The notes below the pieces were generated by a model. The model was not told where the DNA came from. It ran no database searches and worked only from the letters and a program-made list of their open reading frames with translations. This document shows, in pieces, positions 1-26,354 of a DNA stretch of 64,000 nt. The stretch comes from Ostrea edulis (lineage: Eukaryota), in NCBI RefSeq assembly GCF_947568905.1, contig NC_079168.1:82584001-82648000 (forward strand), given 5' to 3'. Within the stretch, counting starts at the first letter, position 1; each line of letters begins with the position of its first letter. Position numbers and translations under genes: made by a program.

Positions 1-12
1 AACAAATCATAC

Positions 13-2130
13 CTGGGAGTGTCCTATTACTTGAAGCTTGTGAAGTATGTGGTGGCTGAACATTGTGATGGTCAGTTACCGGTATGACATTGTCCATTGC
101 AGACGTACACATTGACCATGTCGTGGACAACGCTGTCATTCCCAAAGGAGATGATGGCCTGCTTGTGGTAAAATGTGCTGATGGATTTGGTTCAAATCCA
201 GGTAGTCGGGTGGGGGGCGTGTCGTACTTTGAACCATATTTATGACATGGCAGAGGTTTGGTGGTGTTTTTTTGCAAAGGTGTGTAATGTAGGTGTTGTG
301 TATCATAAGGCGAGATAAAAGTGTGGCCTATTTGTGTCGACCTCTGTGTGTCTGGATGTACGGGTGTTTAAGGTGAGATGTGTCTGGATGTACAGGTGTT
401 AGGTGAGATGTGTCTGGATGTACGGGTGTTAGGTGAGATGTGTCTGGATGTACGGGTGTTAGGTGAGATGTGTCTGGATGTACGGGTGTTAGGTGAGGTG
501 TGTTTGTACTGCCTTGGTACTGTGTGTTTGGGTGCGCGGGTGTTGATGTTAAGTTAGGTGTGTCTGTCCTGCCATGGTACTGTGTGTTTGGGTGCGTGGG
601 TGTTGATGTTAAGGTAGGTGTGTCTGTCCTGCCATGGTACTGTGTGTTTGGGTGCGTGGGTGTTGATGTTAAGGTAGGTGTGTCTGTCCTGCCATGGTAC
701 TGTGTGTTTGGGTGCGTGGGTGTTGATGTTAAGGTAGGTGTGTCTGTCCTGCCATGGTACTGTGTGTTTGGGTGCGTGGGTGTTGATGTTAAGGTAGGTG
801 TGTCTGTCCTGCCATGGTACTGTGTGTTTGGGTGCGCGGGTGTTGATGTTAAGTTAGGTGTGTCTGTCCTGCCATGGTACTGTGTGTTTGGATGCGCGGG
901 TGTTGATGTTAAGGTAGGTGTGTCTGTCCTAGCATGAGAGTGTTCATCATCACTACCACTTTCCTCAAACTGAGCTGCTAAGATAATTTTATTTATCTCA
1001 GTTTCAGTGGTGGTCTTTTTTGATGTCACCTTCTCCTTACTGATCTTTCTCTTTTTGGGACTGGTGCACTCATCTTGTCTTTTGCTTTCTTTTACTTTCT
1101 CCGTTTCTTTCCTCTTTCTCTTCCCTCCCATCGTTTTCTCCTCGTTGACCTCAAAGCGAAATAAACACTCTGGGGTTTCTTTGTCCCCGAGGTCTTTTTT
1201 TGCTTTTTTAATAAGTTTTACATACGCCTGGTTAGCGAATTCCCCCAGGGAATCTTCCTTATCTGAAATATAGTACGAACCCTTGTCTGTGATGTATCAC
1301 AAAAAAAATGTATGAATTGTTAATATTTACAAAAAATATACTTGAGGGGGGGGGGGGGGGGGGGGGGGGGGGTGCAGATCCCATTTGGATTCGCCTATTT
1401 TGTTAATTTTTCAAAATTGTTTGGTGCCGATATTGTTGTAATGTTGTACAGGTTGACAATGTGCATTTCCTGTTGGATATTTTATCACAAAACATAATTG
1501 ACTACTGTTGATGATAACAGTTATATTATTGAAGCTCTCCTAAATTATTTGTCTGAAGAACAAATTATATATATGGTAGTTAATTTGTTTACTTCACTGT
1601 TGTAAATGTTTTCATATGTGTATTTTTAAAAATGTTTATTCTAATCGCAATTTACAATCAAGAGATTATAATAAATGTCTCGAAGAATATCTGTACCAGA
1701 AACGTTTGCTTTACGAAATGTGAGTCAATATACAGAGAATTGGATGTAGTCACGTGACCAAGTTTTGAATGTTCCTAGAAAAGGCTAAATAAACCTTACT
1801 AAAAAGGTATTCTACAACATAAATTGTAAGTAAACATGAACAGAAAGAAATCTAATATATATGTATATCTATTGATATATATATATGTGTGTGTGTGTTT
1901 GTTATGTTTACCCATACAGTGGTCACAAAGTTTTAAACAAAGAATATCACATTACCTCCGACTTTCACTATTGTCCCATGGTACAAGACTTTGGGCGCGT
2001 TTCCTTTCATTTTCCACAGCATTTCCACCTTTTCTCTTGGCAAAAAGTTTCCAAGAAGCTTTAAATCGCGATCATTCCTTCCTACGACACTTAGGCTACT
2101 ATCTTCTTTGAAATATATGCAAGCAAACAT
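13..2130 (-). CDS. Accessory gene of element 1 (spliced, runs off the window), homologous to the BEN-like-domain gene of element 2
   Basis: Exon 2130-1956 (MFACIYFKEDSSLSVVG...) matches exon 10583-10739 (MFGCVFFHEDKSLSVVG...), with the same phase-1 intron. Exon 1286-13 is Lys/Thr/Pro-rich. A 2-nt excess in the last 30-bp repeat (~370) shifts the frame; corrected, it is open to a GT donor at 12. Confidence 0.7.
347..498. repeat. 30-bp coding tandem repeat, ~5 copies (HLTPVHPDTS)
   Basis: Unit TACGGGTGTTAGGTGAGATGTGTCTGGATG repeated; one copy is 32 bp. Confidence 0.95.
499..930. repeat. 60-bp coding tandem repeat, ~7 copies (GRTDTPTLTSTPTHPNTQYH)
   Basis: Near-identical 60-nt units on successive sequence lines 541-900. 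Confidence 0.95.
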
Positions 2131-2405
2131 TTTTTAAAACTTGGTTTACAATTTGCAACGTTTCTCGTATATCGCGCGCTCTGGTGATGGCAACTTGACC
2201 GATCAACTGATAAGAGTAGCTGCGAAGGCTGGACGCTGTGAGGGACAACACGGGGATTTTGAAGTAATTCCATACTGGAAGTTATTTCTCACTTAATTGT
2301 ATATTAAAGAACCAATGAATGCAACGCATATATACCATACTATCTGCAACAAACCCCTGTTTTACCCTAAATTAAGCATCATTACATACGTATATTCAAA
2401 GCAAG

Positions 2406-5355: not shown

Positions 5356-5559
5356 TTATGCATACTAATTGAAAGTACATATTATGTACATGTTATTAAC
5401 ATGTGGACATCCATGGAACTATGGTAAATAAATGGGAATTTTGAAAGACAATTCAAATTGTATGATATGTTTTAATGTATAAAATGTCTAAGTCCCACAT
5501 TTCTGATTCACGATAATTTCGAAGTTCCAAATTCCGGCTCACGAAAATTCTAAGTTATA

Positions 5560-5813
5560 AATTCCGTGTCGCATGAAGATTTCCGTCTGTAAAAATAATC
5601 TAAGTGTTGATTTTACGTGTGAAGATAGATAACGATGCAGTTTACTGTCGGTTTCCGGGCGGAATTTCTTATTTTTCTGGCCGTAAAATTGGGGTAGTTA
5701 CGGGCAGAATTTTATTCCTCCCCAATTACAACCAGAAAATAGGCATTCCTTCTACTTTACTGTCTATTCCCGGGCGAATTACGGGCGGATTACGTCTCAA
5801 AGTTTCGTACGGG
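5560..5813. repeat. Subterminal repeat array and terminal inverted repeat of element 1
   Basis: Clustered ACGGG/CCGT/GGGCG motifs ending in AAAGTTTCGTACGGG. Confidence 0.75.
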
Positions 5814-6004
5814 TAAATTTACCTTTTCATATAACCTACAGTAACAATGTAAAATACTAATACTAATAGGTGTGGAATAAATCAGTAGAGATCATACTTA
5901 ATACAAAATATAGCCTTCTGATGAGGTCAATCCCTAGAAATATATAGACCTTATAGAGAAAGCATATCGACAAAGCACAAAGTGCAAGTTCGATCTATAT
6001 ATAT

Positions 6005-6270
6005 CCCGTACGAAATTATTAGACGGATCCCGTCTGAATTTCAGGCGGAAAGTACATGGAATCCATCTAAGTCCTCCTAACCTTAGGTGGATATTAGACG
6101 GACATAAAATTCCGTCTAAGAAAAGGCGGAATACGCTTCAGCCTTGAGGCGGATTCCGCCTCTTCCTTTAAGCGTATTTCATGATTAAGCAGGAAAAAAA
6201 AAATTAGAAAATTTCAGTCTGGTCACTTAGATGGAATTTGGACTTAGATCTTTCGGTAAGGCGAAATTTT
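6005..6270. repeat. Left TIR and subterminal GGCGGA/GACGGA array of element 2
   Basis: Many AGGCGGA, AGACGGA, CCGTCT and CCGCCT motifs in both orientations. Confidence 0.85.
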
Positions 6271-6741
6271 GAACTTAGTCAATTTTTGTTGATTCTCAAA
6301 TCTTCACAAATTTAAAAAACTGACCTTTGCTGATATTAACAAAGCATACCCTGGTATTCAATGAACATGCTTATTAAACCTCAAGTTATATGACCAAAGT
6401 TGTTAAGTACCACGTAAATTGTAAAAAATAAAAACAAGATTTATCTGATTATTTCTTGGAATTTTTTTTATTATTTTTGGAATGTTGTTTTCCACTAACA
6501 TTATCAGAATGCTATAAGGCCAAGGGGCATCAGTCTATGTACATTTATTCAACAGAAGAAGAAAGAATCACTGCTTGCAATCATTTTAGGAATATGCAAG
6601 AATAAGTTTATAATGTCTAATGCATCATTAACACACAGAATAAAACCATCAGTGAGAAAAATAATGCTATAACAAGCATATAATTTAAACATCATCTTAT
6701 GTAATGCATGCACTCTGATCTACACATAGTTCTGGACCATT

Positions 6742-9700
6742 TTAGTCAGACTCTAACCTGTTTGGAAACTTACACATGAATGAGGTCTGCCCTCCAGGAA
6801 AAGAAACAAGCAAACAGCTTGACAATATATCATTTATATTTACAACTTCAACATCATTTGTTTTAATAACTGATAACATATTTGAATTTTCATTGTAATT
6901 TCTGCATAGCAACTTCTTTATGAATACAAGAGGTTTTGTTATACCTGCAGTGTTGTCTTCCAACAAAATAAAAAAGATAACTTCTCCAAAGCTAATCCCA
7001 CTCATTCCATTGTAACAAATTGCTGAATTGTTCCTTTTGATCATTCTGGAATATTCAGTGCCATAAATTATATATGATTCATATTCTACTCTGTTAAAAC
7101 TTCTAAATGTATCACACACATGATCATATTTCAAGAAATTTTGGAGTGCAGCAGTCTCAACATTGGTCAATACTCTACTGTACGGGGCACCTAGAATGTA
7201 TATCCCACTCCCTAGTTTCTGACCCCTCTTAAGCAAAGATGGCTCTTCAATAGTTTTGCATAATTCATCAACTTCCGAATTTTCTAAGACACATTTCTGT
7301 TTTAATTCAGGTAGCTTTTGGATAAATGATATAGCAGTTATTATCTGAGTATCAATACTCTGACTTCCTCGGATCATTTTCAAAACAATCCCATTTTTAC
7401 TTTCAAAAGAAAAGCAGCTGTGGGTATAGAGAGGGCCAAGATCCCTTACACAATCTGGTAAATGAAGCAGTTGATGGACATTTAGTCTTAAAAAACATCT
7501 GTCATATAACTCTTCTAAACACCTACAAAACTCAAACAAAAGCATTTCAGCTCTATCTAAATCTTTTTCATTTGACCCAAATTTCAGAAGTATGTGCATA
7601 GAGTCCACCAACAAAAGAAAGTGAAAAAATCGCTGCATGTCTAAAATTCCATGCAGAACTGGAGCACCAAAAAATAATAAAAAAGATCTATATTCTGATG
7701 CTTTCCAATATTTCAAGTCTTTTTCTATAGATCGTGGTAATCTAGAAATATCAAGAGTAGGTCTAATACTCTGAAGCCTGGTATCTACTTCACAAACACT
7801 GTCATAAATATTATATGCTTTCCCTTTGTGCTTCTCACTAAACCATAATTCTAACAACATCTTTTGCACCCCTAATAGGACACCATGCATGTAGTCAATG
7901 GCAATGCCAGATACAATGTTAAAATGGGGCACGAAGAAAAGCCATGATGGTCCCTTTATACCTTTTACTGGCTTTCCCATTACAACCTGTTGGTCTTGTA
8001 CTGCTGTCCTTGCATTTTCCAACACATTTTCCTTTGTTCGTACTGGTCCTTTGGGTTCTTCACTTTGAAACGGAAAAATCCTTGCATGGCCTCGCCCAAC
8101 AGATGCTGTCTCTCCTTCTTGCTCACATTTCCAACAGGAGAATGCTCCATTGTATTGTACGTGGTTACAAAGTAAACTTCTGGCTGGGAGATCAGCTGTT
8201 CCACATAATAAGAGACCTCTACACAGAAATTGGCCTCTTTCAGGTGATATACATTTGATTCCTTCATTCATCTTCTGTAGCGATTTTAAAAATGGTTTTA
8301 AAAATGTCCCCATTGATGGTTTTTTGTTTCCATACCACAGGCTTGCCAATATCATGTTCTCTTTCTGCATCCGCTGCTTATATGGTAATTCGTTAATAAC
8401 AAGATAAATCGGCCAAATAGATGTCTTGCTGCTTTTAAAAACAGGAGCTCCATCAGTATTGAAAGTAAATGATATGTTTTCTTGAAAACTTAAAATTCCG
8501 TGATTTTCACTTAATTGTTTGTACAGCTTCCCATCATAAATATCTTCATAGGTGTTATCACTGGATTTCCTTTTGAATCTATGTCCTAAACTCTCATAAA
8601 ATCCTTTCTGAGCGAATAAATTTTTTATTTGATGTTCTAATGGCATTTCAATGAAATAAGAGGCATTTCTAACACTAAATTGAGCTTTACAAAATTCATA
8701 AGGACAGCTTTGCACTGTGGTGTTATCTATATATCCAACACAGTGATTACAGTAGTAGTGGCGAACAAGTGGATTCCTCAGATTCTTGAAAAATAACTTA
8801 AATTCATATAATGACGTACAAAGTTTATGACCATGTGGAAGGGCTAAGGCCAGAATCTTTAGAAGTTGTTCTGTTGCCTCTCCAATCAGATTATACTTCG
8901 TAGTAAATATGGCAAGCAACAGCATAAATGCACCTAATGTCACTGCAGCACCAGGATAGAGTGGATCTGAATCGACATCATTATCTTCTGCATCCCGATC
9001 TGTCGAGTGCTCTACCTCAGTTGGAATGTAAAGATCTGCTAATGAATCAAACTGTAAATCAAAATCTTCCTCAGCCAAAGTTTGTTCATCTTCCGTCAAA
9101 TCTTTAAAGGATTCCGGCTCCGAATTGCAGTTGGTAATTAGTTCTTGTTCGTACGTTTGCACAAAGTTAAATTGGACTTTGTTTGTTTCCACAGAAGCTT
9201 CCTCCAGTGTTTGTGATGAAACCGAATCTTGATCTTGGTCAACCAAAGTCTGAAATTAAAAATAACTCGGTGAAAAAAAAAAAACTCACGAAATTTGGTT
9301 CTGAAACCTGTGAAGCGACGTTCCGTTCCTTAATTCCGAGAAAATTCGAATTGGGGCTATATGCTAGGTTTCTGAATTAACTATACGCGTAAAAAATAAT
9401 TTAATCATTATAACACGATCATTTCACAAATTACCTAAAGTATATCCAGGAAAAAAAACAAAACATTTGCAGTTGTAATGGCATACGCATGGCATTGTTG
9501 ATATTTATTCCATTGCATGTACAGATTTAAAAAAACCGGATGTTTCGATCAATTTCATTCATTAACCAATTCGCTCGGGGACGCATTCGGAATATTACAC
9601 AGACCCACAATTTTCAACAAACTAGATGAATTAATACATCAAGTATTTAAGCTTTAATTTACGTTTTGAGATATTTTCATTAAGATTTTATTGATTAAAA

Positions 9701-10069
9701 AATATTTTTAAATTGCATACAGAATTCTTTAAAAAAAAAGGGGGGGGGGGAATGAAAACGGGGGGGGGGGGGGGGGGGGGGTATTATTCATACCTCCTCG
9801 ATTTGGCTTTCATCCCGAGACTTGGGAACAGGCTGCTCACCACAGACAGAGGATTTTTCAGGCAAAGGAAAATCAATTTGGTTCATGTCCGAAAATTCGG
9901 TAGTATCGGTATCCAATTTCATTACCGTCTCGCTCATCAGCTCAGAATCCGATAAATCTTCATTCCCTTGAAAAGGCTCAAAACTGCAGCTTTGCTCTTG
10001 TAAAACGAACTTCTTGTATGGGCCTCGTTTCCCTTTTGCTTTGCGCTTTCCAGTTTTTTCAACGTCCAT
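6742..10069 (-). CDS. EnSpm/CACTA transposase, two exons (10069-9794, 9249-6742)
   Basis: Same motif series as element 1 (FNTDGAPVFKSS, DLPAR, IDYMH, WKASEYR, FSFESKNG); N-terminal KRGPYKK and C-terminal FPNRLESD also shared; in-frame GT-AG intron. Confidence 0.9.
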
Positions 10070-10582
10070 TTTTCAGTTGTCTTCAACTGTTCTCTATCAG
10101 TACTATTTTCAATATACATGTAACTGAGTAACTCAATACCAGGCAAAGATTCTGAGTTGGCCGATTAAGGCAACCAAGGGGTGTTATTGTGCTTACGATT
10201 TTTTTACGGGATACCCTTTTTAAAAATACTATCATGCTTTATATATTTTTTAAAAAGTGTGTGTGAGTATGTCATATGTATTGAAATTACAAATTGTTGA
10301 TATAATTCCGTATTTACGTTTATTATCATGATTAATTGTGATACTTGTGACATAATCAGAACGTTCAAGTTTGCTTGCGCTGCATTTATAACCCCTGGGG
10401 TGCCCTTAGCCTGGTTCTCTGAAATCTGATCATGATGCCATGTGATGCTGACCACTGCTGACCACCAACTGTTTACGCGCTTGATAAATCTTTGTTCACA
10501 AAAAGCCACGGTAGACATTTTGATAACACGAAAGTTCGCTACACTCTTGATCACTTTGCCTTTATTAAACTTAATTCTAAAG

Positions 10583-13500
10583 ATGTTCGGATGTGTTTTC
10601 TTCCACGAGGATAAAAGTTTGAGCGTTGTTGGAGAGAAGTCTAAACGGCTGGAGCTCTTGGGATCTTTTCAGGAGAGAGAAAAAGTTAACATGAAGTGGG
10701 GAAAAGACATTTTCTCGGGAGTTATTGTCCATGTGCATGGTAAGACTATCTACTTCTAATTAAAATGTTTTATCTTCTTTATTGCTAACATTCCAATATG
10801 ATTACTTGTATTAACATGATTAAACTCTTTAAAAAATTCTGGGAGATGGTCGGAATATGCCAGTAATTAAAAAATGAATATTTTTCTGACAATTTTAAGC
10901 ATAATGTTACACGTAATCGTTTGTATGTACAGAATCAGTATGATATTGATATTCAACTTCAGTAAACCTATTTTTACGCTCATGAACAAATTTAGTTAAT
11001 TTTGATTTTAAAAAATGTTGTTCGGAACATTCTCCATTGTTGGCTATGAAAACGCCAGTCATTCCGATAGCAGAAAGCGCGCATTGCCGATTACAGTCCT
11101 TGGTGGAACTCTTTTGTGTAGGAAACTTGATAAGCCTTGTGTACATTACCGTTGTTGTCATCATGCATACACTTGGATATATATATTAATTAGTATGGAT
11201 ATTTACGTTCATCAAGCCGTTGTGATTTTCTTCGGCACACAAATGTAGGCAAATTATTTTATAATTTTTACTATTTTAAGTTTTAAGTGACTTTAAAGGA
11301 AAAGGAAATCTTAAGCACTTTGCTTAGTTAGTTTAATAAACCTTTACGTTTTTAATACCGGGTAACACGAGTTATATCTTTTATAGAGAATCAAGATCTA
11401 CTTGATGCAGAGACTGTAAAGGCAGAGAAGAAAGTTCTGAGAGGGAAGAACTTGAGCTCTGAAGACAGTGTCGAACTACTTATCGCGCATTTCAAAAAAG
11501 CTGAGAATGAAAACCAGTCTGAGAAAAGAGACAGGAAACGGGAAAGGAATCAAACGGAAAGGGCCAAAGAAAGCCAAGAACAAGACAAAGAAATGAGCCC
11601 TAAAAAGAAGAGAAAAAATGTGGAAAATGAAGACAAAGATAATCAAATCGAAGGGAAAGATGAGGGAAGGAAAAACAACAATGAAGAAAAGAAAAACAAT
11701 GCAAATGATGAAGCAAAGAAAAACAAAAACAAGCCTGATAAAAAGAACAAAGTAGAAGAAAAGAGTAAGAAGAAAACCATGGAAGTTGCAACACCAAAAA
11801 TTAAAGAGAAACAGGAAAAGAAGGCTGAGAGTAGTGTACAGCTGCTAACTTCAAAAGAGATGCTTTCATCATCATCTTTGTGTGAACAGTTTGGGTTAGC
11901 AGCTGCAACACAAAATATTGACAATAGCAAGGATGACTTAACTCTGACATCAACCTGGGCCCTCTGCAACCCAGAGCTGGAAAGGTCATCTGTGATGTCA
12001 GCAACAGGTAATTATACAGAGAAATGTTGTACACACCCACATTGACATAGAACGAAATAGTTTTTGATATATTTCCTTGTTGAATAGTTCCATCTTTTTG
12101 TGCCATTCTATGTTTTTAATATATTTCCTTGTCGAATAGTTCCATCTTATGATGCCATCCAACCACCAAATGATGTAATTGAGGTATTTAGATTACTACT
12201 GAAACCACAAATACAACGCTACATGAGAAGTGTGATCACCCAGTTCCATGAGACCACATCCCAGGTAAAGCACTGTATTTTTAATCAATTTACAAAGCCA
12301 TTTTAATTAAAACTCTATCTTCTTGTGGTTTTGGAATTAATTCATAATTTTTCCCTTAGATTGACAATACAATGACTGATACATGCATACCCACATATAC
12401 AACAATGTCACCTGCCACATGGACACAAGACTCCAATTATACGCAACCAGCTCCCTGGACTCCACAAATTACAGAGCCATCGCTTCATCAGCAGATGCCA
12501 ACACTGCAGATTTCCCCTCCACATTCAACACATTACATGCCACCTCGACAGATGCCACCTCAGATGCCACCACAGATCTCACCTCAGATTACACTGAAAC
12601 AGATTCAACCGCAAATCACACTGGAACAGATGCCACCACAAATTTCACTGGAACAAAGTCCAATGCAACACATGCTTCCAAATCATGCAATTCCATCCCA
12701 ACATGTGACACCACAAAAGATGAATACCGCACCACAACAGATGCCATCAAACCATGTAGACAGCCCAATTACACCAAGGAGGTCACCTAGGAAGCATGTA
12801 TCTACTCCAGAGCTTTCTGATGGACAGGTAAGCGATGGTTACTATACCAGCAACTTTTAATTCTTAATAATATTTATCTTTATTTTAATAACTATATATA
12901 TATAACATATATAAGAAATATTGAAATGAAACTTGCATATGCAGAAGAAATACATAGTCATCTAATGTACTGTTTTGAAGAACTCTTTTTTCCTTGTTCA
13001 TCGATATTTATTGCAGAGATAAATCTCCTAAATTAATTTTCTGTATTACTTCTAGATGACGAGGCTCCTGTCAAACCATCCCTTGACAGTTAGGAGGGAT
13101 GCACTGAGGAAAGCAAAAAGTGCAGCAAAAAAGGTTCATTCCTCAAAGATGGCCTTCACTTTGACTGCAAAACTCCTTCCTGCAGTTTTTTCATGTGAGG
13201 AGTTGGCCCTCAGTAGAGGACAAGGTCTAAAATCAAAAGATGGAGACAAAAGACCTGTTCTTGATGTCACAAAGATGACAGTTTTAAAAGGTATTAAAAT
13301 AAGTGCTGGTGTCACTGTGTCATGGTAACAGCAATTCTACTAAAGTGAAAGCAGAAAGATTTCGGAAGAAATATCTTAATACCAGATAAATTAATAGTTG
13401 ATTGAGTTACACAAATATTTCAGAGCAAAGTGATACTAAATAATGATATATGATATAAATTCTTCTTTTTCAGAATACGTAGCAGTGTGGTGCGAGAAGA

Positions 13501-13601
13501 ATGGTGGAAAACATGGGGAGAAGGAGGTCAATGATGCAGTAACGGAGCAGATTTCGTATGCCAGAAAAAAATTAAAGGGGAAGAAAAAACAAGACAGTTA
13601 A
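10583..13601 (+). CDS. Six-exon 577-aa accessory protein with C-terminal BEN-like domain
   Basis: Exons 10583-10739, 11387-12007, 12140-12264, 12360-12827, 13056-13290, 13474-13601; all GT-AG, phase-compatible, 1734 nt with no internal stop. The C-terminus (LTAKLLPAVFSCEELA...RPVLDVTKMTVLKEYV...VNDAVTEQISYARKK) fits the BEN pattern. Confidence 0.8.
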
Positions 13602-13849
13602 GACAGACAAGTCGATAGCTGAGTGGCTTCAAATTTGTAAATTTGAGTGATTATGAAGTTATTATTTGATTGTTAGTTGTACAACCTCCTTATCTGAAAA
13701 CCTCTATATTTAAATTGTATTAAATTCAAGACTTAATTTTATTAAATTAATTTTTTTTAATTAAATGTAATTGTTTCATAGCAACAATGAGTTTACTTGT
13801 CTATATCCTTGTTATATTGAAAGACGGATTCATTTGCATATTCCGCTTA

Positions 13850-14107
13850 ATGTACGCCTAAGCTTTATGCCATATTCCGTCTAAAATTTAGCAGGATTTT
13901 TAAGCGGAATCTTTAAGCGGAATCTTTAGGCGGGCTAATTTACATATTTCGCCTAAATTTCCGCTTAAATTCCAGCTGGACTCCATCTAATGTCCACTTG
14001 TATTTCGCCTAAGTTAACTATTCATAGTAATGCTGACTTCAGGCAAAATACGCCTTAGTTGTCCGCCTGAAATCCGCCTTTTCTCCGCCTGGAATATTTC
14101 GTACGGG
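13850..14107. repeat. Right subterminal array and TIR of element 2
   Basis: Repeated TTCCGCT, AAGCGGA, AGGCGGG and TCCGCCT motifs ending TTTCGTACGGG. Confidence 0.85.
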
Positions 14108-14550
14108 ATGCTTTCTCTAAGGTCCATATACATGTATCTAAGGATTGTGCCGAATCAAAAGGCTATAGTATATCTAGTCAATTTTTTATATCAGTTATTG
14201 AACAATAGCTTTAAAATACGTTTTGAACACTAAATAGTTTCTCGTACGAGACTTTGTTACGTCATACTATATTAATGACGTTTATAGCAGCTGAAGTATT
14301 GGTTTTATAGAAACATCCATTTTATGTTGATCATTGTAACGCCATTACTGTTGTTGTTGCATAGAGAATTGTTTTCAATTTTAGAAACACCAGGTTTATA
14401 AGCTTTTTTAGAAGCTTAAAAGTGAAATACCAAGATTTTATGAAGTTTTATTCTTGAACATGTGATCAAGTTTGAGCCAACCAGGTAACTCACCAGGGAA
14501 TAATAGTGGGAAAAAAAATAAACCCCTTTATGAACAGCACAAAAACTTAC

Positions 14551-15123
14551 TGTTGGCTGGATTTAATGTCCTGTAGAATAACTTTAGATATGCTCATCAT
14601 TGAAGCATGCTCAGAGGCTCCAAGGTAGTTGGAGTAGACTTCACTATTACGGAATTTGAAAGGAACTCCTACAATAATTAATCATACCACAATAAGGATT
14701 TTTTTTTCTTTTTAGAAAAATAAATCTGGTCAAATTGATTGTACATGTACAATGTCATATTTAGCTATACATGTATATATGTATGTTGGTGTTGGAACTT
14801 TATACAGTTTAAGCAAAAAAAAAATGAACAGCTATTAAATTTAGATACATGTACCTGCTAGTTGCATTTGTGCACAATGCATTGGCAGCCATCTCCTACT
14901 GATATTTGTAGATGTGTCATCAATGAACAAATTCACAGGAATTGACAGTTTCGGAATGCGTTGATTCTGATACGAATTCAGAACCTCAGACTTCTCCTAA
15001 AATAAAAACTATTAGGGTTACTTAGTTGCTTTCATTAAACACAGTCTTTTTCTATACATTGTGTATATAAAACACAGTAAGAATAACAAAAAAAAAAATT
15101 TGTTTAATAGTGAAAATTTCCTC

Positions 15124-15158
<35 letters not shown>

Positions 15159-17242
15159 TCACCTTGGCTCATATTTAAAGATTTTTCCTATTCGTATGTA
15201 AAACTTTGATCCCCTATTGTCGCCTCATCTTACTCCAAGGGGTCATGATTTTAACAAACTTGAATCTGCACTATGTCAGAAAGCTTTCATGTAAGTTTGG
15301 TTATAATTGGCCCAGTGGTTATGGAGAAGAAGTCGAAAATGTAAAAAGTTTACAAACGGACGGACAGACAGACGACGGATAACAGGTGATCAGGAAAGCT
15401 CACCTGAGCTTTCAGCTCAGGTGAGCTAAAAACTGCAAATGGACCTTGTCTAAAAATTATAATCATGAATTGTAAATGGAATCATGATTTACATTTCACT
15501 TGAATGGTTTACAAAACCTTATGCCCAAGATCAAATTCCTTCTGACTACACTATTACACTGTACCTCATCTGATATTTCGACCAGTTTTCCTGATGTTGC
15601 CATTTCCATAATTTTTATGTGATCTGCTGAGTATGCAGACAAACTAGATAATGGAGCAGCACTGCATTTTGTTGTCTTCACCAAGCAGCTGTTGAAAGAA
15701 ATCGACAAAAAATTATGGTTATGGTTATATGAACATAGATGTACTACAAATAGATGGGATACCAAAATACATTTTACCTATGAAGCTTGCATTTATATCA
15801 AACAAAATGACCATTAGCCTAGACTGTCATCTAAGTATTAATCATGTCAATTTTTCAGGCAATGACAACTTTGTTCACACCTTAACTGGAACACTGGTTT
15901 CACATGAATATTTTACGGTTGATGAGGACTCTAAAATCATGATCATATTCATGCATTTTGGCCTCAACAGAAGTTTATAGACTTAATGTCCAAATTTAGT
16001 TAAGAATCATATGTAAGGAAACTCATATGTAAATCATATGAGACATGTATGTGTACTTTAATTATGTAATATGCAGATGCTGGAAATCAAGTATTTCTAT
16101 TCATTCTACGACAGTCGCGATGGCCTAGAGGTTAGAGCGTTCGCCTGCATGCGGAAGATCAGGGCTTGAATCCGAGATACAATCAACCAATCAATAGTTA
16201 AGCCAATATACACATTTCAAATTACAAGGGCATGAATTGGACACTACATTGTACCTTTGATTGTCTTCATTCCTTTCCTGTTTCAATATTTCTAAATCAG
16301 CCAGAATAAAATTTTCCTACAAGAGTAAAAATATGCAAAATAATAAAGTATATGCTGTATTCAGTAAAACTCTGATATAGCGAATTTCTGCAGACACTCT
16401 CTAAAAATTCGCTTTAAGCGTAATTTGCTATACGTTTATACCGAATTCATAATTAAAATATAACGAATTCGTTATAAAACTGATTTGTTCTACATGTATA
16501 TCAGTTGCATAAGAAAACCTAATCTAAAAAATAAGCGAATTTTAACAATGTACCTCTTCACTCTCGTAAAATGATCTTATGATTCCAATAATATGGTCAG
16601 CTGTTGATTCCACAACATTACCCACATGAAAATGAGTATCACCAAATGTTGCCCAAGGGGATACGATTTCATGGAGGCGACTGCCGTCCCTTTGCTCACG
16701 TACAAGACCAGTTTTCCGTGGATACCTTAATGAGAATAATTTAGGGTTAAATTACAATTAAGTCAAACCTCCTTATCTTGAACTCAATCGGACCAAAATT
16801 AAACTTAGGAATATGCGAGGATTCAAGAAAACAAGGTAAAAAAAACATAACAGAAAAAGCGGTTGGTTTGCCAGTTCACGTTGACACATGCATCCCTGAT
16901 ATCAGTTAGTGTTTGAGATAACAAAGATCTGCATCAATTGTATATTACTGAAGTTCATAAAGTGGTGTGGCCTGTGACAGTTAAATAGACCTCAGTTATT
17001 CATGAACCACTTTCACTACATTTGGTTATACTATGGTTTTACCTTTTCATTCTCATTATAAATAAGTGTTCATATTTATACATACCTGGCAATGTTCTTT
17101 GATATTGAAGGATTGCTCAAGTGGAGTTTGGCAATTTCAGTTGGTTTCAGAATGTATAAAGGTAAACCATTGTCATCTTCTCCCTGATATTACAATAAAT
17201 CTGATACAACTTTTTGGCAATGTAAATAAAATATCAGTATTA

Positions 17243-17280
<38 letters not shown>

Positions 17281-17710
17281 TCACCTTGGCCCATATCTGA
17301 AGACTTTCCATATATACCTTGGTCCCTATTATGGCCCAAACTACCCTTTGCAAACTTGAATCTACACTATGTCAGAAAACTTTCATGTAAATGTCAACTT
17401 CTTTGGCCCAATGGTTCTTTTAAAGCTTTTTTCTATATTTGTATGCAAAACTTTCACCCCCCCCCCCACTTGTGGCCCCATCCTACCCCCTGGGGACCAT
17501 GATTTGAACAAACTTGAATCTGCATTATGTCAGGAAGCTTTCAGGTAAATTTCAGCTCTTCTGGCCCAGTGGTTCTTGAGAAGAAGATTTTTAAATGACC
17601 CCACCCTATTTTTGCATTTTTGTGATTATCTCCCCTTTGAAAGGGACATGGTCCTTCATTTGAACAAACTTGAAAGCCCTTCACCCAAGGATGCTTTTGG
17701 CCAAGTTAGT

Positions 17711-17742
<32 letters not shown>

Positions 17743-19854
17743 TCGAAAATGTGAAAAGTTTACAGACAGACGGACAAGACAGACAGACGGACAGACAGAC
17801 AGACGGACGCCGGACAAAATGTGATCAGAATAGCTCACTTGAACCTTCGGTTCAGGTGAGCTAAAAAATTGAAATGTTAAGTTAAGGGTTGGAAATATGG
17901 TTATATTTCCTGACACCTTTCCTATGTAGGAAATATTGGGTAGATAAAAGGTTTTTTTTTCAACATTGAAATACTGTGTAATATATCAGTTGAATAAAAT
18001 CAATAGATATATATTTCATAATGAGAAAAAAAACAACCAAATGTTTTATACTCATAAACATTTTTTATAACTGCAATCTGTAAAAAAAAAAATCTGAATC
18101 TGTCCTCAGCTACTCTTAAAATAAATTCCATATCCAACAACAAAACACTGATTGGATCACCATGACTCCAAGTGTGATGAGTATGCATTTCAAGGGTAGA
18201 TCCATGGGGGTGGGTGGAGGGGGAGGGGTCCAGACATCCGCTAAAGGGGGTCTTTAGCGGACCAAAAAATTAATTTATTCAATTTCAACGAGACTTTTAG
18301 TAAAAATGATATGAAAGGTGGATACTTATATGCAATTACATTATTCAAATTTATCAACACCATGTAGTATATCAGGATAAATGGGACGAAACACTGATAC
18401 ATGTGTATATATTTACGATATTTTATTTTCGTCAGATACAAGTATCATTTAAAAATTCTTAAAAAGTATATGTAATATAATTTTTTTTACCGCAGAGCTT
18501 CTGGGGGCCTATGCAGCCCCCCCCCCCCCCCTCCACCTAATTGCAAGTAACCTTTAAACCAGCTCTTTTTTATCATTGAAAATCGGATGTGAATATGTCC
18601 ATAACAATGACTAGAATTTGGGAAACAGTAAATTTAATGTTAATATGTGCACAATCAAAAGGCGTAAATAGGGTGGGGGTGGAGATTGTGAAACACCTAA
18701 AAGATCAAGTGCTAGACCCCCCTCCCCCTTCACAAATTTCTGGGTCCGCCTTTGCATTTTTACTCATACCAAATGAATGATGAATCTTACCTTAGCTATC
18801 AAGCTGTTTACATCCAAGTCCCCAAATTTCATGTTTCTGATATGATTTAACGATGGTACATTGGGAACACCAACTTCTTTTAAAATGAACCACACATACT
18901 TTGCCACTTCCAAACTCTTTTAAAGAAAACAAAATGGAATTGACAGGAATGACATTTTTCAGATACTGTGGTTATACATTATTTTTACTGTTCAAAAACA
19001 AGTAGAGTTGGGGAATATCACTGATGCAAATTTCAGTATCAATATAAGAATTACTGACTTGGTCATGTATCAAAGCACATTACTAAAACAAATATTTAAT
19101 TAATTCAAATGTCATATATTCATACCTCCCACACACACAAAAAAAATGCATTTTCAGAATTGATGATTAGGGAAATATTTGTGATCAGTTGTTCTAAACA
19201 AAGTATAATTCGATTCGATCTGTTTGTAATGAATGTGAAAATTCTAGTTTGTTTGTTTTTTTTAAATTTGGATTTTAATATAATTTACACATTTTACTTA
19301 CAATGTGATGTGTTGTACTATGAAGCAATCCATATAAAAGAAGACTCAGCTTGTCTGGAAATGGATACCACTTGCTATCATTTGTTTGGTCCTCGTATGT
19401 TTGGCTCTCAGAGTCACTACTGAAGCCTTCATTCTAAAAACAAAGTGTCAATATTTTCCTATCCTTTGTAAACATGAAACTAAACGGTCTAAAATTTACA
19501 CTCAACAACTTCTTGTAAATTAATAAAATTTCTAAATAATGATACAGAATATTCAAAGTACAATACCAATAGATCATAATCCTCTGTCTCCGAGACGGGT
19601 TCAGTCTCCCCATCGGTATCCGAATCGTCATCGTTAATCAACGTTGCGAAACTGTTTTCTAAAATTTCTGCGTCTCGTTGAAAAGAACACGAACTAAACT
19701 TCGTCGTATTGTCGAGATTTTCCTCCTTGTCACAACAGGTGTTCATCAGGCTTTTGAAGCTGTCATTTAATAGGTGTTTTCTTGTAAGATTGTGTCGATT
19801 TAAATGATTTATTTTGTCAAATGACACATCACAGACGTTGCAGCGAAAAGCCAT
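14551..19854 (-). CDS. Nine-exon C2H2-finger + DDE-like (CACTA-related) transposase, C-terminal part not in view
   Basis: Exons 19854-19567, 19433-19302, 18916-18791, 17183-17086, 16725-16554, 16316-16255, 15688-15565, 14996-14855, 14668-14551; all GT-AG and in frame (1262 nt, no stop). Motifs: CNVC..HNLTRKH, WYPFPDK, VPSL, SNP..RYP, LFIDDTSTNISRRW..LAGVP. Confidence 0.75.
15124..15432. mobile_element. Non-autonomous Helentron-associated element (HINE/DINE-1-like)
   Basis: AACAAGAGGCCCATGGGCC hairpin plus GCTCACCTGAG at one end; GACAGACG microsatellite; AGCTCACCTGAGC-TTTCA-GCTCAGGTGAGCT hairpin at the other end. Confidence 0.8.
16113..16185 (+). mobile_element. tRNA-derived SINE head fragment
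   Basis: A-box-like TGGCCTAGAGGTTAGAGCG and degenerate B-box-like GGCTTGAATCC; no complete cloverleaf. Confidence 0.55.
17245..17867. mobile_element. HINE-like element with internal satellite-like monomers
   Basis: Same two terminal hairpins as 15124-15432; repeated AACAAACTTGAA monomers; its first ~270 bp closely match 58622-58921. Confidence 0.8.
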
Positions 19855-19997
19855 CGCGCCAACTGTCAGTGTCAAAATCAATGTTCAGAAAACGCTTTCA
19901 CACTGTTTGCATTACTTGCCATCGGTTCAAGCGCGAAGTTAACCAAGCATATTTTAGCACGCGCTAGCAGACGATCAAAACATAAAGGTTCGCAAAG

Positions 19998-22900
19998 ATG
20001 GAGAGAGACTACTTGGCAGTAAGTATCGCTAAATTTGTTTATATTCAATACACTGACCCATATCTATGAATAAAATGTTTAGATTTTAATGCAATACAAG
20101 TATCTATGCGTGTTTACTCAATGTCTAAGGGCAGTAACTCGAACAAAGATGAGGAGTGGATCTAAGAACTGTCTGATATTTTGGTTTTATCATAAACAAA
20201 CAGGAATCATAAATAAACAATTCATTAACTTTTAATTGACATTCAGTCATTAAGGTGCATATGGTATTTATTCACAGGACTCTCAAGATGACCTATTCGA
20301 AAACTCAGAAGTGGGGCCTCTCCCAAATCTCTCAGATTCTCCACAATTAGCTCGAGTAGTTCCTGAATCACCCCCTGCTCCTCCCACTGTTGACATCCCT
20401 CCACAGGATAAAATTATGGCAGTGTTGTCAGAAATTTGTAAGGAACTTAATTTCTTTCTTTTTTTAATTATTGTAATGATTAACTTATTCATAAGTATCA
20501 ATTTATTCAAAAGTAATATATTATTTTTCAGTAAAAATTGTTTATGTATAAATATTAATGTTTTCTGGGGGGAATAAATAAATAAATAAGTGATTATAAT
20601 ATAATTGATGCTTGTTTGTTTGATACATATTTCTCCTAGAATTAGAATTGAAAGCACAGTTTGACCAAAATCAAAACCTTCATAAATAAGGAATATATTT
20701 AATGTTCTTTTAAGTGAAAGAACAGAAAAAGCTGACAGAGGAGGTTAACAAATTGAGAGGAGAGGTCCAAAGGATTAAGAACAAAGAAGCACTCTCAATG
20801 ACCAAAGTGTCAGTAGAAGGGTCAACTATTGAGGTATGGTGTATTATCATTTGTAATGAAAGTCATATAAGATTAACAGTTAATATGATCCATTTTATAT
20901 TCTAACAGAAAGTGAATTAAATTAATTAAAACCTATGATGAAAACTATTAATTTTAGTAAAAGCATTTATGAATCATTTATTTACAAAAGCCAATAACAT
21001 TTTACTTACCTTATGCTAGTATAAATGCAGGCCAGTAATATATTTATAGCTCACCTGAACTGAAACCTCAAGTGAGCTTTTCTGATCAACCGTCCGTCCA
21101 TCTGTCTAGCTTTCATGGCCCCTGGGGGTCGTATATGGGGTCACAATAGGAGATCAAAGTTTTATATTGAAATATATTGCAATTTTTTTTTAAAAGCTTC
21201 TTTTCAAGATCCACTGGACCAGAAAAGATGAAACTCAGATATGCAAGCTCTCTGAAGTAATTACGTAGTTTGAAAATTGTTCAAATCATGGTCCCTGGGG
21301 GTTGTATGGGGCCACATTAGGGACTTGTGATTTTTTACATCAAAATATATAGGAAAAAAACTTTATAAATCTTCAAATCAAGAACACTGATCCAGAACAG
21401 ATGAAAGTCTTATGTGAAAAATTCTTGACATAGTGTAGCTAATTGTAAATTGATCAAATCATGGCCCCCGGAGGTAGGGTGCGGCCACAATAGGCAATTT
21501 AATTTTTAATTAGCAAAATACAGGGAGAATGTTTAAAACTTCTCTCCTCAAGAGCTGCAAAGCCATGAAAACTTATATTTATGTGAAAGCCTCCACAGCT
21601 GGCATAAATTCAATGAAGTTTGTTGAAATCTTGAACCCCAACGACAGGGTGGGGCCACAATAGATGATAAGAGTTTGACAATGGAATTTATTGGAAAGGG
21701 TTTTGAAAGCTAATTCTCAAGAATAGCAAAGCCATCATTTATCATATTTACATGGAAGCATTAATTGTCAGGAAGTGTAGATTCAATTGTGTTCAAATTA
21801 TGGCCCAGTGGGTTTTAAGGTGGTGCCACAAAATGCAACAGTAAGCATTGTGGTTCATGGGCCTCTTATTTAAAGCCATCATATACCCGTTTTATTTTAT
21901 ATATGCTGTGAATTAATGAATTAATTGTATTTTCACAGAAGGAGTATATAAATTTCCTAAAAGCCAAATTCAGCGTATTTCTGTGGATCAATTTCCAAGA
22001 TCAAGAAATACAGGTTTGTTAGTTGATATATTCTGATGAACAGTGAAAATTGTTAACTGGTTAAATACTTCAAAAGAGGTGCAAAAGTGTTCACCTTGCT
22101 AACAAAATTAAGAATGAGTACCTTAAATTGGGACATATTGTTTTTATTTCAAAAGTGAAAAGTACATTTTTTGCTGTAAGAGGCAACATTTCCAATTTCA
22201 ATTATCAGTTCACCTGAGCCAAAGAGCTTTTCTGTTCGAAGGGTGTCTGGCATCCATCTGTCTGTTTGTCTGTTCGTCTGTAAACTTTTCACATTTTTCA
22301 CTTCTTTTCAAGAACCACTGACCCATTTTTAACCAAACTTGCCAACAAGCATCCTTGTGTGAAGTGGATTTCAGTTTCTTCAAATGAAGGACCATGCACC
22401 CTCTTCCAAGGGTTGATTTTTGTTGAATTAAAGAAAATTGAATTGCATTTTTCATAACATCTACTCAAGAACCACCGGACCAGAAAAGATCAAACTTCTG
22501 TAAAAGCTTCAATACATTAGTGTAGATTCAAGTTGTTTAAATCATGATTCCCGGGGCTAAGGCAGGGTCACAATAGGCAAATAAAGTTTTATATAGGAAT
22601 ATAACGGAAAAATCTTTACAACTCTTCTTCTCAAGAAGTGCAAAGCCAAGATCATAGTGGTCATGTAACGTGTTCAAACATTTAATTTATACCTTTGATG
22701 TTTAAATAAATAAATCATTTAAGTATTATTTCACACTGAAACATTATTCGGATGTAAATGTGTGTTGATAAATGATGTAATCTATCATAATGCCCTTTAT
22801 GGGATTTTGATGATGTGACCAACTCATATTTTTACATCCCAATAAAAGTTTTGAAATGATACCTTATTTCGCAATAAAATACTTCTAAGAACTGCATGCA

Positions 22901-24279
22901 TGGTGCAACCAAACTGCATCAGCCAAATTTTACAAAGGTTAATGAAGCTATATTATATTGTTATGCCTGCACTGAGAGGCAAAGACATTGACAAATTAAC
23001 CCCTGTATGTTGTTTTTATTTCAAAAACAGGTATGAATTTTCTAACTGTATGATAACATTTTTTAGGGAATGCTGAAGGACTTTACCAGTAAAGCAGGTT
23101 GGGCAGAAAGAAGTCATGTCCTGGGGGTTTTGTCGAGCTTTGGCTCGACAAAATTTACTTATTACAGGAACCAGACAACAGCAAAGGTAATTAAGAAACC
23201 ATGTGTAGTAAAAGGTGATGTCTTGATTTATTGTAAATGTATTTCATTACAAATTAAGACATAAAACAGTGTTAAACGTTTTAATGTAAAGGAAACTTTT
23301 TTCAGTGGGGTGTACTATTAAATACACATAATTCATGGAAATAATTTGATATTTGATTAATTGTATATTATGTTATTTGAAATATCTAGTTAAAAGTATA
23401 CATATGCTTGAAGTCATTATTCCTTTTTGTAGTTAATGGGCAACAAGGAGATTGATGTGGAGGGACTTTCTTTAAAGTCCCTCCACAACTACCTGTGGAA
23501 GTGTTTTTTGCCACCAGCAATTCCACTTGTGGACATAGAGAGGGAACGCTTGACCTTATTGCTGGTAATTAATTTCATGCAATATTGTTTGTTTTACCAT
23601 TTTCAACCACATTAGTTATACAGTATTTTTCTAAATGCTCTATATATTAAGATAAAGATTTTGTTTATACCACATTTGCCTAGCAATAATTTATAGATTC
23701 ATAAATTTGATATGTGAAAGAAATATTTAATTCTCTTTCTCTTGCCTGCATGGGAATCAAATTTTTGTCTCATGTAAATTCAGAAATTAAAGTAGACTTT
23801 AAAAATTCTAAACACTTTCATTTTAATTGCAATGAGACGTACTACATTGTACTACAATCTGAAGTTTATTTATTTAAAAAAAAAAAATAAGAAATGGAAA
23901 TGGCATGCATTTACTCGTTGTCACATGTCGCGGTCAATATGTACCATCCTCTCCCATTCTGGAAAGAGCTATGAGCGAACTCCAGATTTTGGCTTGATAC
24001 AATAGCATTTCCTTAGAAGGAAATCATTTCACTTTAGCATTGATTCACTTAAAGGCATGCATAATACCTGAAACAATACTTGTACATGTTTATTTCTAAT
24101 TTCCATAGAGATCTTTCTGCGCATCACAGAAATTGTTCCGTAAAGGAGGAACAAGTGGCTTTGCTTTCTGGGCTGAATTCCATAAGTTTGTGGACACCGT
24201 CAACAAGGATGGTAGACTGGACAAGTGGGAGAAATTGGAGGAAAAGAAGGAGAGAAGAATTGAGAAATATTTATCATAA
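19998..24279 (+). CDS. Seven-exon 265-aa protein of unknown function (acidic/Pro-rich region, coiled coil, helical C-terminal domain)
   Basis: Exons 19998-20018, 20278-20437, 20715-20833, 21939-22013, 23067-23186, 23433-23564, 24109-24279; GT-AG, phase-compatible, 798 nt ending in TAA. Confidence 0.7.
21045..21871. mobile_element. HINE-like element (opposite orientation)
   Basis: TAGCTCACCTGAAC-TGAAA-CCTCAAGTGAGC start, CCGTCCGTCC microsatellite, CATGGGCCTCTT end. Confidence 0.7.
22205..22640. mobile_element. HINE-like fragment
   Basis: GTTCACCTGAGCCAAAGAGC start, CTGT microsatellite, satellite-like monomers. Confidence 0.6.
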
Positions 24280-24734
24280 CTTTTTAAATTAAGATTTTAT
24301 AAATTCAAGTTATTGTTTATTGTATATTTGTGTATTTCTTCTTTAAAATCATGTGCAGTTATTGATTTACTTGTTACTTTTAAATATGATATGTTTTTAT
24401 ATGTGTATCAAAGGAACTGAAATTTAGCACAAAATATAAGTATCGACAAGTGCTAATCTTGCTTTGTCTTCTTTTCGGTGAAAATTTCACTTTTTATAAA
24501 TGTGAATCTTTCATTCTGATTTCAAAAGTTATGTAAATATGCACTGTCAAATCTTTTATTTCTGTTCATCGTTGAAGCCGTTCCATATTTATAAGATTGA
24601 GATATTTTAGAGAATATTGAGTAATAATTTTTTTGTACTTTGCATTGGTATTTAATCAAGAAATAGTTGTAGAATGAATAGAAATACTTGATTTCCAGCA
24701 TCTGCATATTACATATTAAAGTACACATACATGT

Positions 24735-24979
24735 CTCATATGATTTACATATGAGTTTCCTTACATATGATTCTCATATAACATATTAGCACAGCATGCA
24801 CACAAAACCTTCATATGTGAATCATATGAAGTCCCTTTCATATGATATACATATGTGAATCATATGTAAATCATATGAAACACATCATATGATTCACATA
24901 TGATGCCCTTTTTTTATGATTCTCATGTGAAGCTAATCATATGATCCACATATGAAAATCATATGTGGATCATATGTGG
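24735..24979. repeat. Dense CATATG palindrome array (presumed subterminal repeats of element 3)
   Basis: More than a dozen CATATG hexamers in ~245 bp, ending CATATGTGG. Confidence 0.85.
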
Positions 24980-25914
24980 CAAGCATGCCTGTATACAGTT
25001 GAGGATTTTATTGACCATCAACCAACTCTAACACCAATTGAAGTGGACCATATTCAGAAAGAGACTGTAGGACAGAGTGAAAATAAATCATGGCATGTTC
25101 TAAGAAAAGACAGGATTACTGCATCCAATATGTATGCAGTTCAAACACGTATGGATTCATTCAAGAAAAATCCTGAGGTGGACCTCAGTGCCATTGTATC
25201 TATGGTAATGGGTGGAAAGCCTATTAATTCTAATATTAAAGCTCTGAAGTCTGGTAGAGAGTCAGAGCCACTTGCAAAATCCATCTATTGCAAAATGTAC
25301 CTAGAAAGTCATTTCGAAGCAAAATTTAAAGATTGTGGAATTTTTCTAGATCAAGACGTCTCTTTCTTAGCTGCCAGTCCCGACATGCTGGTGTCTTGTG
25401 AATGTTGTGGAGATGGCTTGTTAGAGGTAAAATCATCAATGCAACCAAAATGTAGTTTATGCTCCGCACTTTGTACATGTAACTTGCCCGATTATTTATT
25501 TACGTCCGATAATGACGCTTTGGAGATTTAAAAAAAAAACAACATAGATATTTCTGTCAAATACAAGGACAGATGGCCATTAGTAAGCGAATGTGGTGTG
25601 ATTTTTTTGTTTATTCCTGTAATGGTACTTTCTCAAAAAGAATCAATTTCCAGGAAGATTATTATTCAAATGTTCAATCAAATTTGATTTATTTCTTCAA
25701 AACATTTATTGCACCTAAATGTATTGAGGAAAAAATCTGTGCTTCAGCATGTATTGTGTGCCCGGACAAAGAGTCTGAAGAATCTGAATGTGAACCAATG
25801 GAAGTAGAAGATGGTGAAGGTGATGTTTATTTTTTAAAGGGATCAACTCCAACTACAGAAATTGGACCGAAATATATACATGTACAGACTGCTTCAGTAA
25901 AAACACCAAACTGA
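24980..25914 (+). pseudogene. YqaJ/lambda-exonuclease-like nuclease, 5'-truncated and frameshifted
   Basis: TVGQSENKSW..RKDRITAS, GRESEPLA, LAASPDMLVSCECCGDGLLEVK; after a +1 shift at the poly-A near 25530: YFCQIQGQMAISKRMWCDFFVY. Confidence 0.85.
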
Positions 25915-26354
25915 TTATTATGTTTATCAATAGGGTATTGTAAACTTTTTAGCTACTCTTATTCTTTCTACATTTGTTCAAAACTTTCGCAATGCACTTC
26001 TCGTTTTAATTAACTGCGAATGACGAGCTGAGAAATGCATAAAGGGACCCAGAAAATTGCCATAAAAAGAAAGAGTGGTTTTAAGTTGTACTGTATATCA
26101 TTAATGTACCATAGCGCGCTCAATGTAAGCAGGCGAACTCAAGTTATCCTGACATTTCTAAATAATGTGTCATCAGCCCTCAAAGCTTAACAGTTCTCTA
26201 TATATCACATTTTAGGATTCTGGCTCCCTCAGGAATAAAGTAACCCCCACCCACCCACATACACACACTTTTGAATGACAGCTCTATACTAGACCAAAAC
26301 GTTGAGGGGGGTAGGCTTGTCGAGATATATTTTTTCATAGCCCATCCCTGATTT

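Follow-up and report, generated by a model that had tools for sequence, protein, structure and literature searches.

The right-hand part of a two-gene oyster transposon whose transposase has a predicted RAG1-like fold

What is the intron-rich, head-to-head gene pair that lies beside two Tnp2 elements in the genome of the flat oyster Ostrea edulis, and does it belong to a mobile element? We addressed this question in a window of 64,000 nucleotides (assembly GCF_947568905.1, contig NC_079168.1, positions 82,584,001–82,648,000 of the forward strand; all coordinates below are those of the window unless stated otherwise). The initial annotation had described, at 14551–24979, nine and seven small exons that splice in frame without a stop, start codons 143 bp apart, and a CATATG array that closes the unit. 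It had interpreted the pair as a little-described transposon lineage with its own accessory protein and terminal motif. The observation is confirmed, with one correction: the unit is not closed at 14551. Instead, it continues to 14108, resumes in a short piece stranded between two nested insertions, and then runs out of the window to the left, with its left end about 10 kb before the window. The whole copy spans positions 82573873–82608993 of the chromosome (designated C5), and two Tnp2 elements, about 17 kb in all, have inserted into one intron of its transposase gene (Table 1).

Table 1. Features of the transposon copy within the window. P0057 is the RefSeq protein of O. edulis LOC125675581 (the copy designated C6), and L033 is the locus of Crassostrea virginica; the sister copy also lies on C5 (its sequence is designated L005).
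Feature	Position	Strand	Observation
Right-hand part of the copy, from the nested-insertion breakpoint to the right terminus	14108–24993		At least 11 other chromosomal sites hold copies at 89–99% identity; all of them end at 24993 and have different flanks beyond it
189-bp piece of the same transposase intron, between the two nested Tnp2 insertions	5814–6002		100% identical to L005:869–1057 of the sister copy
Transposase exon 1: start codon, C2H2 zinc finger, acidic linker	19567–19854	-	Matches P0057 residues 1–96 at 99%; weak Pfam zf-C2H2 and zf-met hits; conserved in L033 at 8064–8204
Transposase exon 2: WYPFPDK motif	19302–19433	-	Matches P0057
Transposase exon 3: VPSL motif	18791–18916	-	Matches P0057 residues 141–182 at 100%; 72% identical to C. 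virginica
Transposase exon 4	17086–17183	-	Matches P0057 residues 182–216 at 97%; 80% identical to C. virginica
Transposase exon 5: start of a BAH-like beta domain in the model (edges approximate)	16554–16727	-	Matches P0057 residues 215–272 at 97%; model residues 237–345 match BAH domains at Z 9–10
Transposase exon 6 (edges approximate)	about 16230–16316	-	Matches P0057 residues 273–301
Transposase exon 7 (5' edge approximate)	15565–15690	-	Matches P0057 residues 293–334 at 100%
Transposase exon 8: first catalytic aspartate, in the DDTS motif	14855–14996	-	Matches P0057 residues 335–382 at 100%; a phmmer search with this exon found the bivalve family
Transposase exon 9, the last inside the window	14551–14668	-	Matches P0057; about ten more exons lie left of the window
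143-bp spacer between the two divergent start codons, presumably a shared promoter region	19855–19997		Read directly from the sequence; promoter function is inferred
Partner exon 1	19998–20018	+	ATG followed by a GTAAGT donor
Partner exon 2: acidic, proline-rich N-terminal part	20278–20437	+	Conserved in L033 at 2601–2389, ending at the same SEI residues
Partner exon 3: coiled-coil-like segment	20715–20833	+	
Partner exon 4	21939–22013	+	56% identical to L033 at 868–788; also seen in Saccostrea and Argopecten
Partner exon 5	23067–23186	+	65% identical to L033 at 647–534
Partner exon 6	23433–23564	+	62% identical to L033 at 373–206; trace seen in Ptychodera
Partner exon 7, with the stop codon	24109–24279	+	Conserved in Crassostrea, both Mytilus lineages, Saccostrea and Ptychodera
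Right subterminal array of 15 CATATG motifs, mostly 11 bp apart	24737–24976		Mirror array of 14 motifs at the left end of the sister copy
Right terminal inverted repeat, ending ..TGGCAAGCATGCCTGTA	24956–24993		Aligns in reverse complement with the left end of the sister copy and of the copy designated C8
TA target-site duplication, right-hand copy	24994–24995		Nine empty sites carry a single TA at this position
Internal inverted copy of the right subterminal segment 24666–24774, in an intron	16003–16112		98% identical
612-bp nested repeat in an intron	17251–17862		Present in the sister C5 copy, absent from every other copy that covers this stretch

Are the predicted exons real? The nine minus-strand exons match P0057 at 76–100% local identity (at least 90% for eight of the nine) with no stop, and P0057 maps onto ten more exons to the left. 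The exact edges of exons 5–7 are approximate, because 7560 in-frame splice combinations exist. On the plus strand, the best GT/AG model has seven exons and gives exactly 265 aa. The WYPFPDK, VPSL, and LFIDDTSTNISRRW..LAG motifs named in the initial annotation are all present. These gene models rest on sequence alone: none of the listed sequencing runs is on record as RNA, and no splice joint of either gene was displayed. Contigs from two runs (X1 and X2; about 95% identical, from another organism) cover mostly exon blocks, and some end exactly at 20278, 20437, 20833, and 24108, but they also span introns and the spacer and therefore prove no splicing.

Is the unit mobile? In nine paralogous sites the two flanks are contiguous with exactly one TA between them, which proves transposition with a TA target duplication. 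The termini are imperfect inverted repeats that read CAYAGG..CCTRTG, the right ends of the copies are identical, and an array of about 15 CATATG motifs, mostly 11 bp apart, lies just inside each end. The array of this copy contrasts with only five CATATG in the other 10.5 kb of the element. Across the window, ATCATATG occurs 17 times against 5.1 expected, and none of 100 shuffles reached 17. Copies are present on at least eight chromosomes, several of them are 98–99% identical, and there are deletion derivatives that keep both ends. We also considered whether the YqaJ open frame at 24965 is a third gene of the element, but the comparison with the empty sites shows that it belongs to the host repeat into which the element inserted. 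All exons that were scored in this copy are open, although the intron now laden with Tnp2 elements leaves any capacity to make transposase conjectural.

To place the transposase, we relied largely on P0057, a 972-aa RefSeq model from a 99% identical copy at C6:4.138–4.155 Mb; the finding in the window covers only the N-terminal 427 of the 972 residues of the transposase. A phmmer search with the exon carrying DDTS found bivalve and hemichordate proteins. A word-index protein search with the protein P0031 and with an alignment (A1) returned only three close relatives, whereas a search restricted to a region of the relative P0014 was successful. The motifs DDTS, ADFNM, CPKC, HLMTH, and SEDVFEKRH are present, and D447, C466, and C469 are invariant in 23 sequences. 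A first structure model built from eight sequences was too poor to use (pLDDT 49), but an AlphaFold model of P0057 (pLDDT 78.5) matches the RAG1 core (Foldseek E 3e-9; VIA Z 17.7 over 454 residues), as well as BbRAGL and HzTransib (Z 14.5 for the latter). The absence of an RNase H-like fold had been named in advance as grounds for rejecting the transposon reading, and the predicted RNase H/RAG1 fold is clear, albeit in the protein of the C6 copy and not in the spliced product of this copy. The model also contains two possible BAH-like beta domains, at residues 237–345 and 765–948, but these matches are only modestly above the background stated by the tool.

The catalytic motifs, the 5'-CA..TG-3' termini with a 2-bp target duplication within the clade's range of 2–5 bp, and the predicted fold place the transposase in the CMCT clade (EnSpm/CACTA-Mirage-Chapaev-Transib-Plavaka-ESTA; Kojima 2025, PMC12730594). 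Within that clade, it shares with Plavaka elements (Pfam PF18759; fungi, red algae, and Amoebidium) the DDTS-type first aspartate motif, the C(2)C and H(3-4)H motifs before the last E, a 2-bp target duplication, and a tendency to be large and to carry extra genes. However, P0057 gives no Plavaka hit at E up to 1, nor do single exons, whereas three bivalve relatives (P0014, P0004, and P0053) pass the gathering score of 26.3 bits with 27–33 bits, and others fail or weakly hit Tnp2. A six-frame search of the genome with PF18759 found nothing, because the exons are too short, and Pfam searches of single exons gave nothing useful beyond the weak C2H2 hit. Moreover, the ends read CATAGG/CACAGG and not TGT..ACA (PlavakaA) or CATCA..TGATG (PlavakaB; PMC12730594), the partner is unrelated to TET/JBP or to PAG2 (as no exon of it hits any Pfam domain), the host is an animal, and the genes have many introns. 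The resemblance to poorly classified fungal CACTA-related proteins of the DDTSGN type, suggested in the initial annotation, is real but borderline.

Compared with En/Spm (CACTA) and its TnpD and TnpA, including the two Tnp2 elements nested in this copy, the catalytic core is homologous (hhalign probability 92% against the neighboring Tnp2), and both have subterminal repeat arrays and use a second protein. Nevertheless, identity is only about 20 per cent, no Tnp2 (PF02992) hit reaches the cut-off of 28.6 bits, the target duplication is 2 bp and not 3 bp, the ends read CAYAGG..CCTRTG where EnSpm/CACTA is defined by CACTA-type ends, and the second protein comes from a separate divergent gene and not from alternative splicing. 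Compared with RAG1-RAG2/ProtoRAG and Transib, the predicted core superposes on RAG1 residues 461–1007, the zinc-binding C2/H2 module is present, and, like ProtoRAG, the element is a two-gene transposon. Sequence identity is about 10–12 per cent, however, the duplication is TA and not 5 bp, and there are no heptamer/nonamer or RSS-like CACAATG ends. The partner looks helical or coiled and, at 265 aa, is too small for a RAG2 Kelch propeller, and the two genes diverge from a shared spacer. A TA duplication and a RAG1-like transposase by remote homology also characterize ESTA (EnSpm-like elements with TA duplications; PMC12730594), which are known only from rust fungi and carry TET/JBP cargo. ESTA membership would further require a transposase that groups with fungal ESTA in a tree, and Mirage membership a 2-bp duplication with a transposase that groups with Mirage; any relationship to either is conjectural.

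Is the partner gene a stable component of the element? Head-to-head genes of 254, 269, 252, and 275 aa are annotated beside the transposase in Mytilus (two lineages), Argopecten, and Saccostrea, and in C. virginica a 259-aa opposite-strand gene lies upstream of the two fragments into which the transposase is annotated. Collinear exon-level similarity is seen in those loci and, as exon traces, in the hemichordate Ptychodera. No exon of the partner has a Pfam hit, and an Atlas feature search with its last exon gave no usable hit; any role assigned to it rests only on conserved linkage. Among copies within the genome, pN/pS of the partner is 0.7–1.5, which is near neutral, as expected for decaying copies, and gives no support for selection; for the same reason, a comparison of exons and introns among copies was uninformative.

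Taken together, the interpretation in the initial annotation, a distinct transposon lineage with its own accessory gene and terminal motif, is supported, and we hold with high confidence that the locus is the right part of one copy of a recently mobile, two-gene cut-and-paste DNA transposon. Our analysis establishes the architecture of this element: its inverted repeats, arrays, and TA duplication, a leftward gene of about 19 exons for a transposase with a C2H2 finger and a RAG1/Transib-type RNase H core (D, D, CxxC, HxxxH, E, with the fold itself predicted), and a rightward 7-exon gene for a protein with an acidic, proline-rich head, a coiled-coil-like segment, and a conserved C-terminal part. 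The mechanism, by contrast, is inferred. In this view, the transposase would recognize the ends through its finger and the array, and would cut and join as RAG1 and Transib do, whereas the partner would be a required accessory subunit that binds either the CATATG array or the transposase, in the way TnpA serves En/Spm or RAG2 serves RAG1.

Alternatively, the partner may be passenger cargo, such as a silencing-evasion or regulatory gene that takes no part in the transposition chemistry, like the TET/JBP or PAG genes documented in fungal and red-algal Plavaka elements (PMC12730594; bioRxiv 10.1101/2025.02.11.637652). Its lack of a recognizable DNA-binding domain is compatible with this possibility, but we consider it unlikely, because the partner keeps the same position and orientation in every lineage examined although the transposases are only 31–38 per cent identical, whereas cargo genes in Plavaka are lineage-specific and move between transposon types (bioRxiv 10.1101/2025.02.11.637652). 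Domesticated host genes that happen to lie in repeated DNA could also be intron-rich and annotated by RefSeq as ordinary genes, as these are, but the evidence for mobility makes this explanation very improbable. It is equally improbable, if not more so, that the partner is a chance chain of open segments or an annotation artifact: despite the shortness of its exons, the many in-frame splice combinations possible in such AT-rich DNA, and the lack of RNA evidence, six of its seven exons have collinear counterparts in C. virginica at 32–75 per cent identity while the introns do not align, the last exon is conserved as far as a hemichordate, and independent gene models of 252–275 aa exist in other species.

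A more far-reaching hypothesis, which is not excluded but which we regard as doubtful, is that this is an animal lineage of RAG1-fold transposons that works as an obligate two-subunit machine, in which the partner would be a cofactor that loads the transposase onto the phased CATATG arrays, and the BAH-like domains would read chromatin marks to choose targets. Such a machine would be an independent parallel to the RAG1-RAG2 partnership, present in bivalves and in a deuterostome.

Transposons with a RAG1-like core are the source of the vertebrate V(D)J recombinase, and how such enzymes come to depend on a second protein is an open question. Here, a transposase with a predicted RAG1 fold keeps the same small partner across bivalves and in a hemichordate, and the clear ends, the proven TA duplication, and the 98–99 per cent identical copies offer a tractable natural system for testing what a second subunit does. 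RefSeq already annotates these genes, as uncharacterized proteins, but the lineage seems barely described in animals. The family adds a well-delimited animal branch to a clade known mainly from plants, fungi, and algae, and it gives annotators a reason to stop calling these loci ordinary oyster genes.

The window is AT-rich animal DNA in which the initial annotation had described an intron-rich, head-to-head gene pair closed by a CATATG array. This observation is correct. On the minus strand, open segments carry a C2H2 finger with its ATG and the motifs WYPFPDK, VPSL, and LFIDDTSTNISRRW..LAG, whereas on the plus strand an ATG is followed by a consensus donor, and the array is present on the right. 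The proposal that the unit is a transposon is also supported, but the element is larger than had been annotated. The positions of its features and of neighboring features are listed in the table below.

Coordinates of the transposon, its genes, and associated features (window positions unless a contig, locus, or protein is named; C numbers are contigs of the assembly [genome G000], and L numbers are stretches of genomic DNA examined separately)
Feature	Coordinates	Strand
Entire window copy of the element	C5:82573873-82608993	
Point where homology with other copies breaks on the left	14108	
Segment where homology resumes	5814-6002	
Right terminus	24993	
Two Tnp2-type elements, ends CCCGTACGAAA..TTTCGTACGGG	1-5813 and 6003-14107	
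Transposase ATG	19854	minus
Partner ATG	19998	plus
CATATG array	24737-24976	
Subterminal segment and its inverted copy in a transposase intron	24666-24774 and 16003-16112	
High-copy short repeats in partner introns	20960-21560 and 22150-22760	
Interrupted YqaJ/viral alkaline exonuclease frame	24996-26000 and L020:1501-3097	
Insertion in partner exon 2 of the sister copy	L005:7292 / L008:1501 (equivalent to window 20346)	
Repeated 140-bp segment in the transposase gene region	L005:1-140 (C5:82445349-82445488)	
Amplified block of copies	C10:40.80-42.74 Mb	
BAH-like beta domains of the modeled transposase	P0057 residues 237-345 and 765-948 (the first encoded by window exons 5-8)	

In a DNA search of the whole genome, we found many copies of the element, all of which stop at the same base on the right and are followed by unrelated flanks on C8, C10, C6, and C1. 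On the left, homology with a sister copy located 137 kb upstream and with a copy on C7 breaks, resumes over a short segment, and then resumes again left of the window. So, two elements with ends CCCGTACG..CGTACGGG, each carrying a Tnp2 open frame, sit inside this copy, both in the single intron between transposase exons 9 and 10. The second of them is flanked by a 2-bp duplication (AT), rather than by the 3 bp of classic CACTA elements. The true left end of the transposon was obtained by following the sister copy and the C8 copy leftward. Its reverse complement matches the right end: (TA)CAYAGG, six or seven unlike bases, and then TGCCACATATGATCCNCATATGA. A matching array of 14 CATATG motifs follows at this left end. 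A 110-bp piece of the right subterminal region is repeated, inverted and 98 per cent identical, in a transposase intron, and it may once have served as an alternative end.

The 600 bp outside each end of the element are adjacent to one another in at least seven other places in the genome, with two bases between them, and a search with a short pattern across that junction identified nine sites carrying a single TA. This proves insertion with a TA duplication. The element sits inside the coding frame of a YqaJ/viral alkaline exonuclease gene that belongs to another repeat family with at least nine copies, and joining the two flanks restores an open frame of 241 aa. Not every copy represents a separate insertion. 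The window copy shares both flanks with the sister copy at 100 per cent identity, so the two arose by segmental duplication. Similarly, at least eight copies on C10, about 92 per cent identical, share one right flank and form a segmentally amplified block; both genes carry stop codons in the five of these copies that were aligned. The sister copy differs from the window copy in carrying a 4.4-kb insertion with ends AGCCGTGTTTCGAGTTACTCC in partner exon 2, as well as a one-base frameshift in the last transposase exon, neither of which is found in the window copy. In addition, a 140-bp segment inside the transposase gene region (stretch L005, from the sister copy) matches more than 30 places in the genome at 97–99 per cent identity and is probably a short interspersed or miniature element.

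A phmmer search with the exon that carries the DDTS motif returned only bivalve and hemichordate proteins. A later search returned P0057, the Ostrea edulis RefSeq model of the C6 copy, which is 972 aa in length. P0057 maps onto nine exons in the window at 76–100 per cent local identity (at least 90 per cent for eight of them) and onto ten further exons that lie left of the window and are open in this copy. Exons of the window copy were searched one by one rather than as joined proteins, and the splicing of the predicted genes is supported only by homology and by gene models made by others. An alignment of 23 relatives shows an invariant D, CxxC, and further conserved positions, and the HLMTH and SEDVFEKRH motifs lie about 20 residues apart, as in RAG1.

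The AlphaFold model of P0057 (pLDDT 78.5, pTM 0.74) matches the RAG1 core (Foldseek E-value 3e-9; VIA Z 17.7 over 454 residues, with an rmsd of 4.8), and it also matches BbRAGL (Z 15.9) and HzTransib (Z 14.5). Two beta domains of the model resemble BAH chromatin-reader domains (Z 9–10), but this similarity is suggestive only. A profile comparison with the neighboring Tnp2 gives a probability of 92 per cent at 20 per cent identity. P0057 passes neither the Plavaka nor the Tnp2 Pfam model, whereas some relatives just pass Plavaka. By the criteria of Kojima 2025 (PMC12730594), the element belongs to the CMCT clade, although its ends fit none of the named Plavaka subgroups.

For the partner gene, the best GT/AG model has seven exons and encodes 265 aa. 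Very high-copy short repeats lie in its introns, and their depth in the DNA sequencing runs is hundreds of times that of the surrounding sequence. In Mytilus galloprovincialis (two lineages), Argopecten irradians, and Saccostrea cucullata, the gene next to the transposase on the opposite strand encodes 254, 252, 269, and 275 aa, and none of these proteins has a Pfam domain. In Crassostrea virginica, a 259-aa gene on the opposite strand lies upstream of the two fragments into which the transposase is annotated. Exon-by-exon comparison shows collinear similarity, with 32–75 per cent identity in Crassostrea, weaker similarity in the other species, and three exons in the hemichordate Ptychodera flava. 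A tree shows several deep bivalve lineages, all of them far from Tnp2. Whereas the insertion of the element with a TA duplication is demonstrated by our analysis, the function of the partner is a matter of inference: we infer that it has an accessory role, either at the CATATG arrays or on the transposase.
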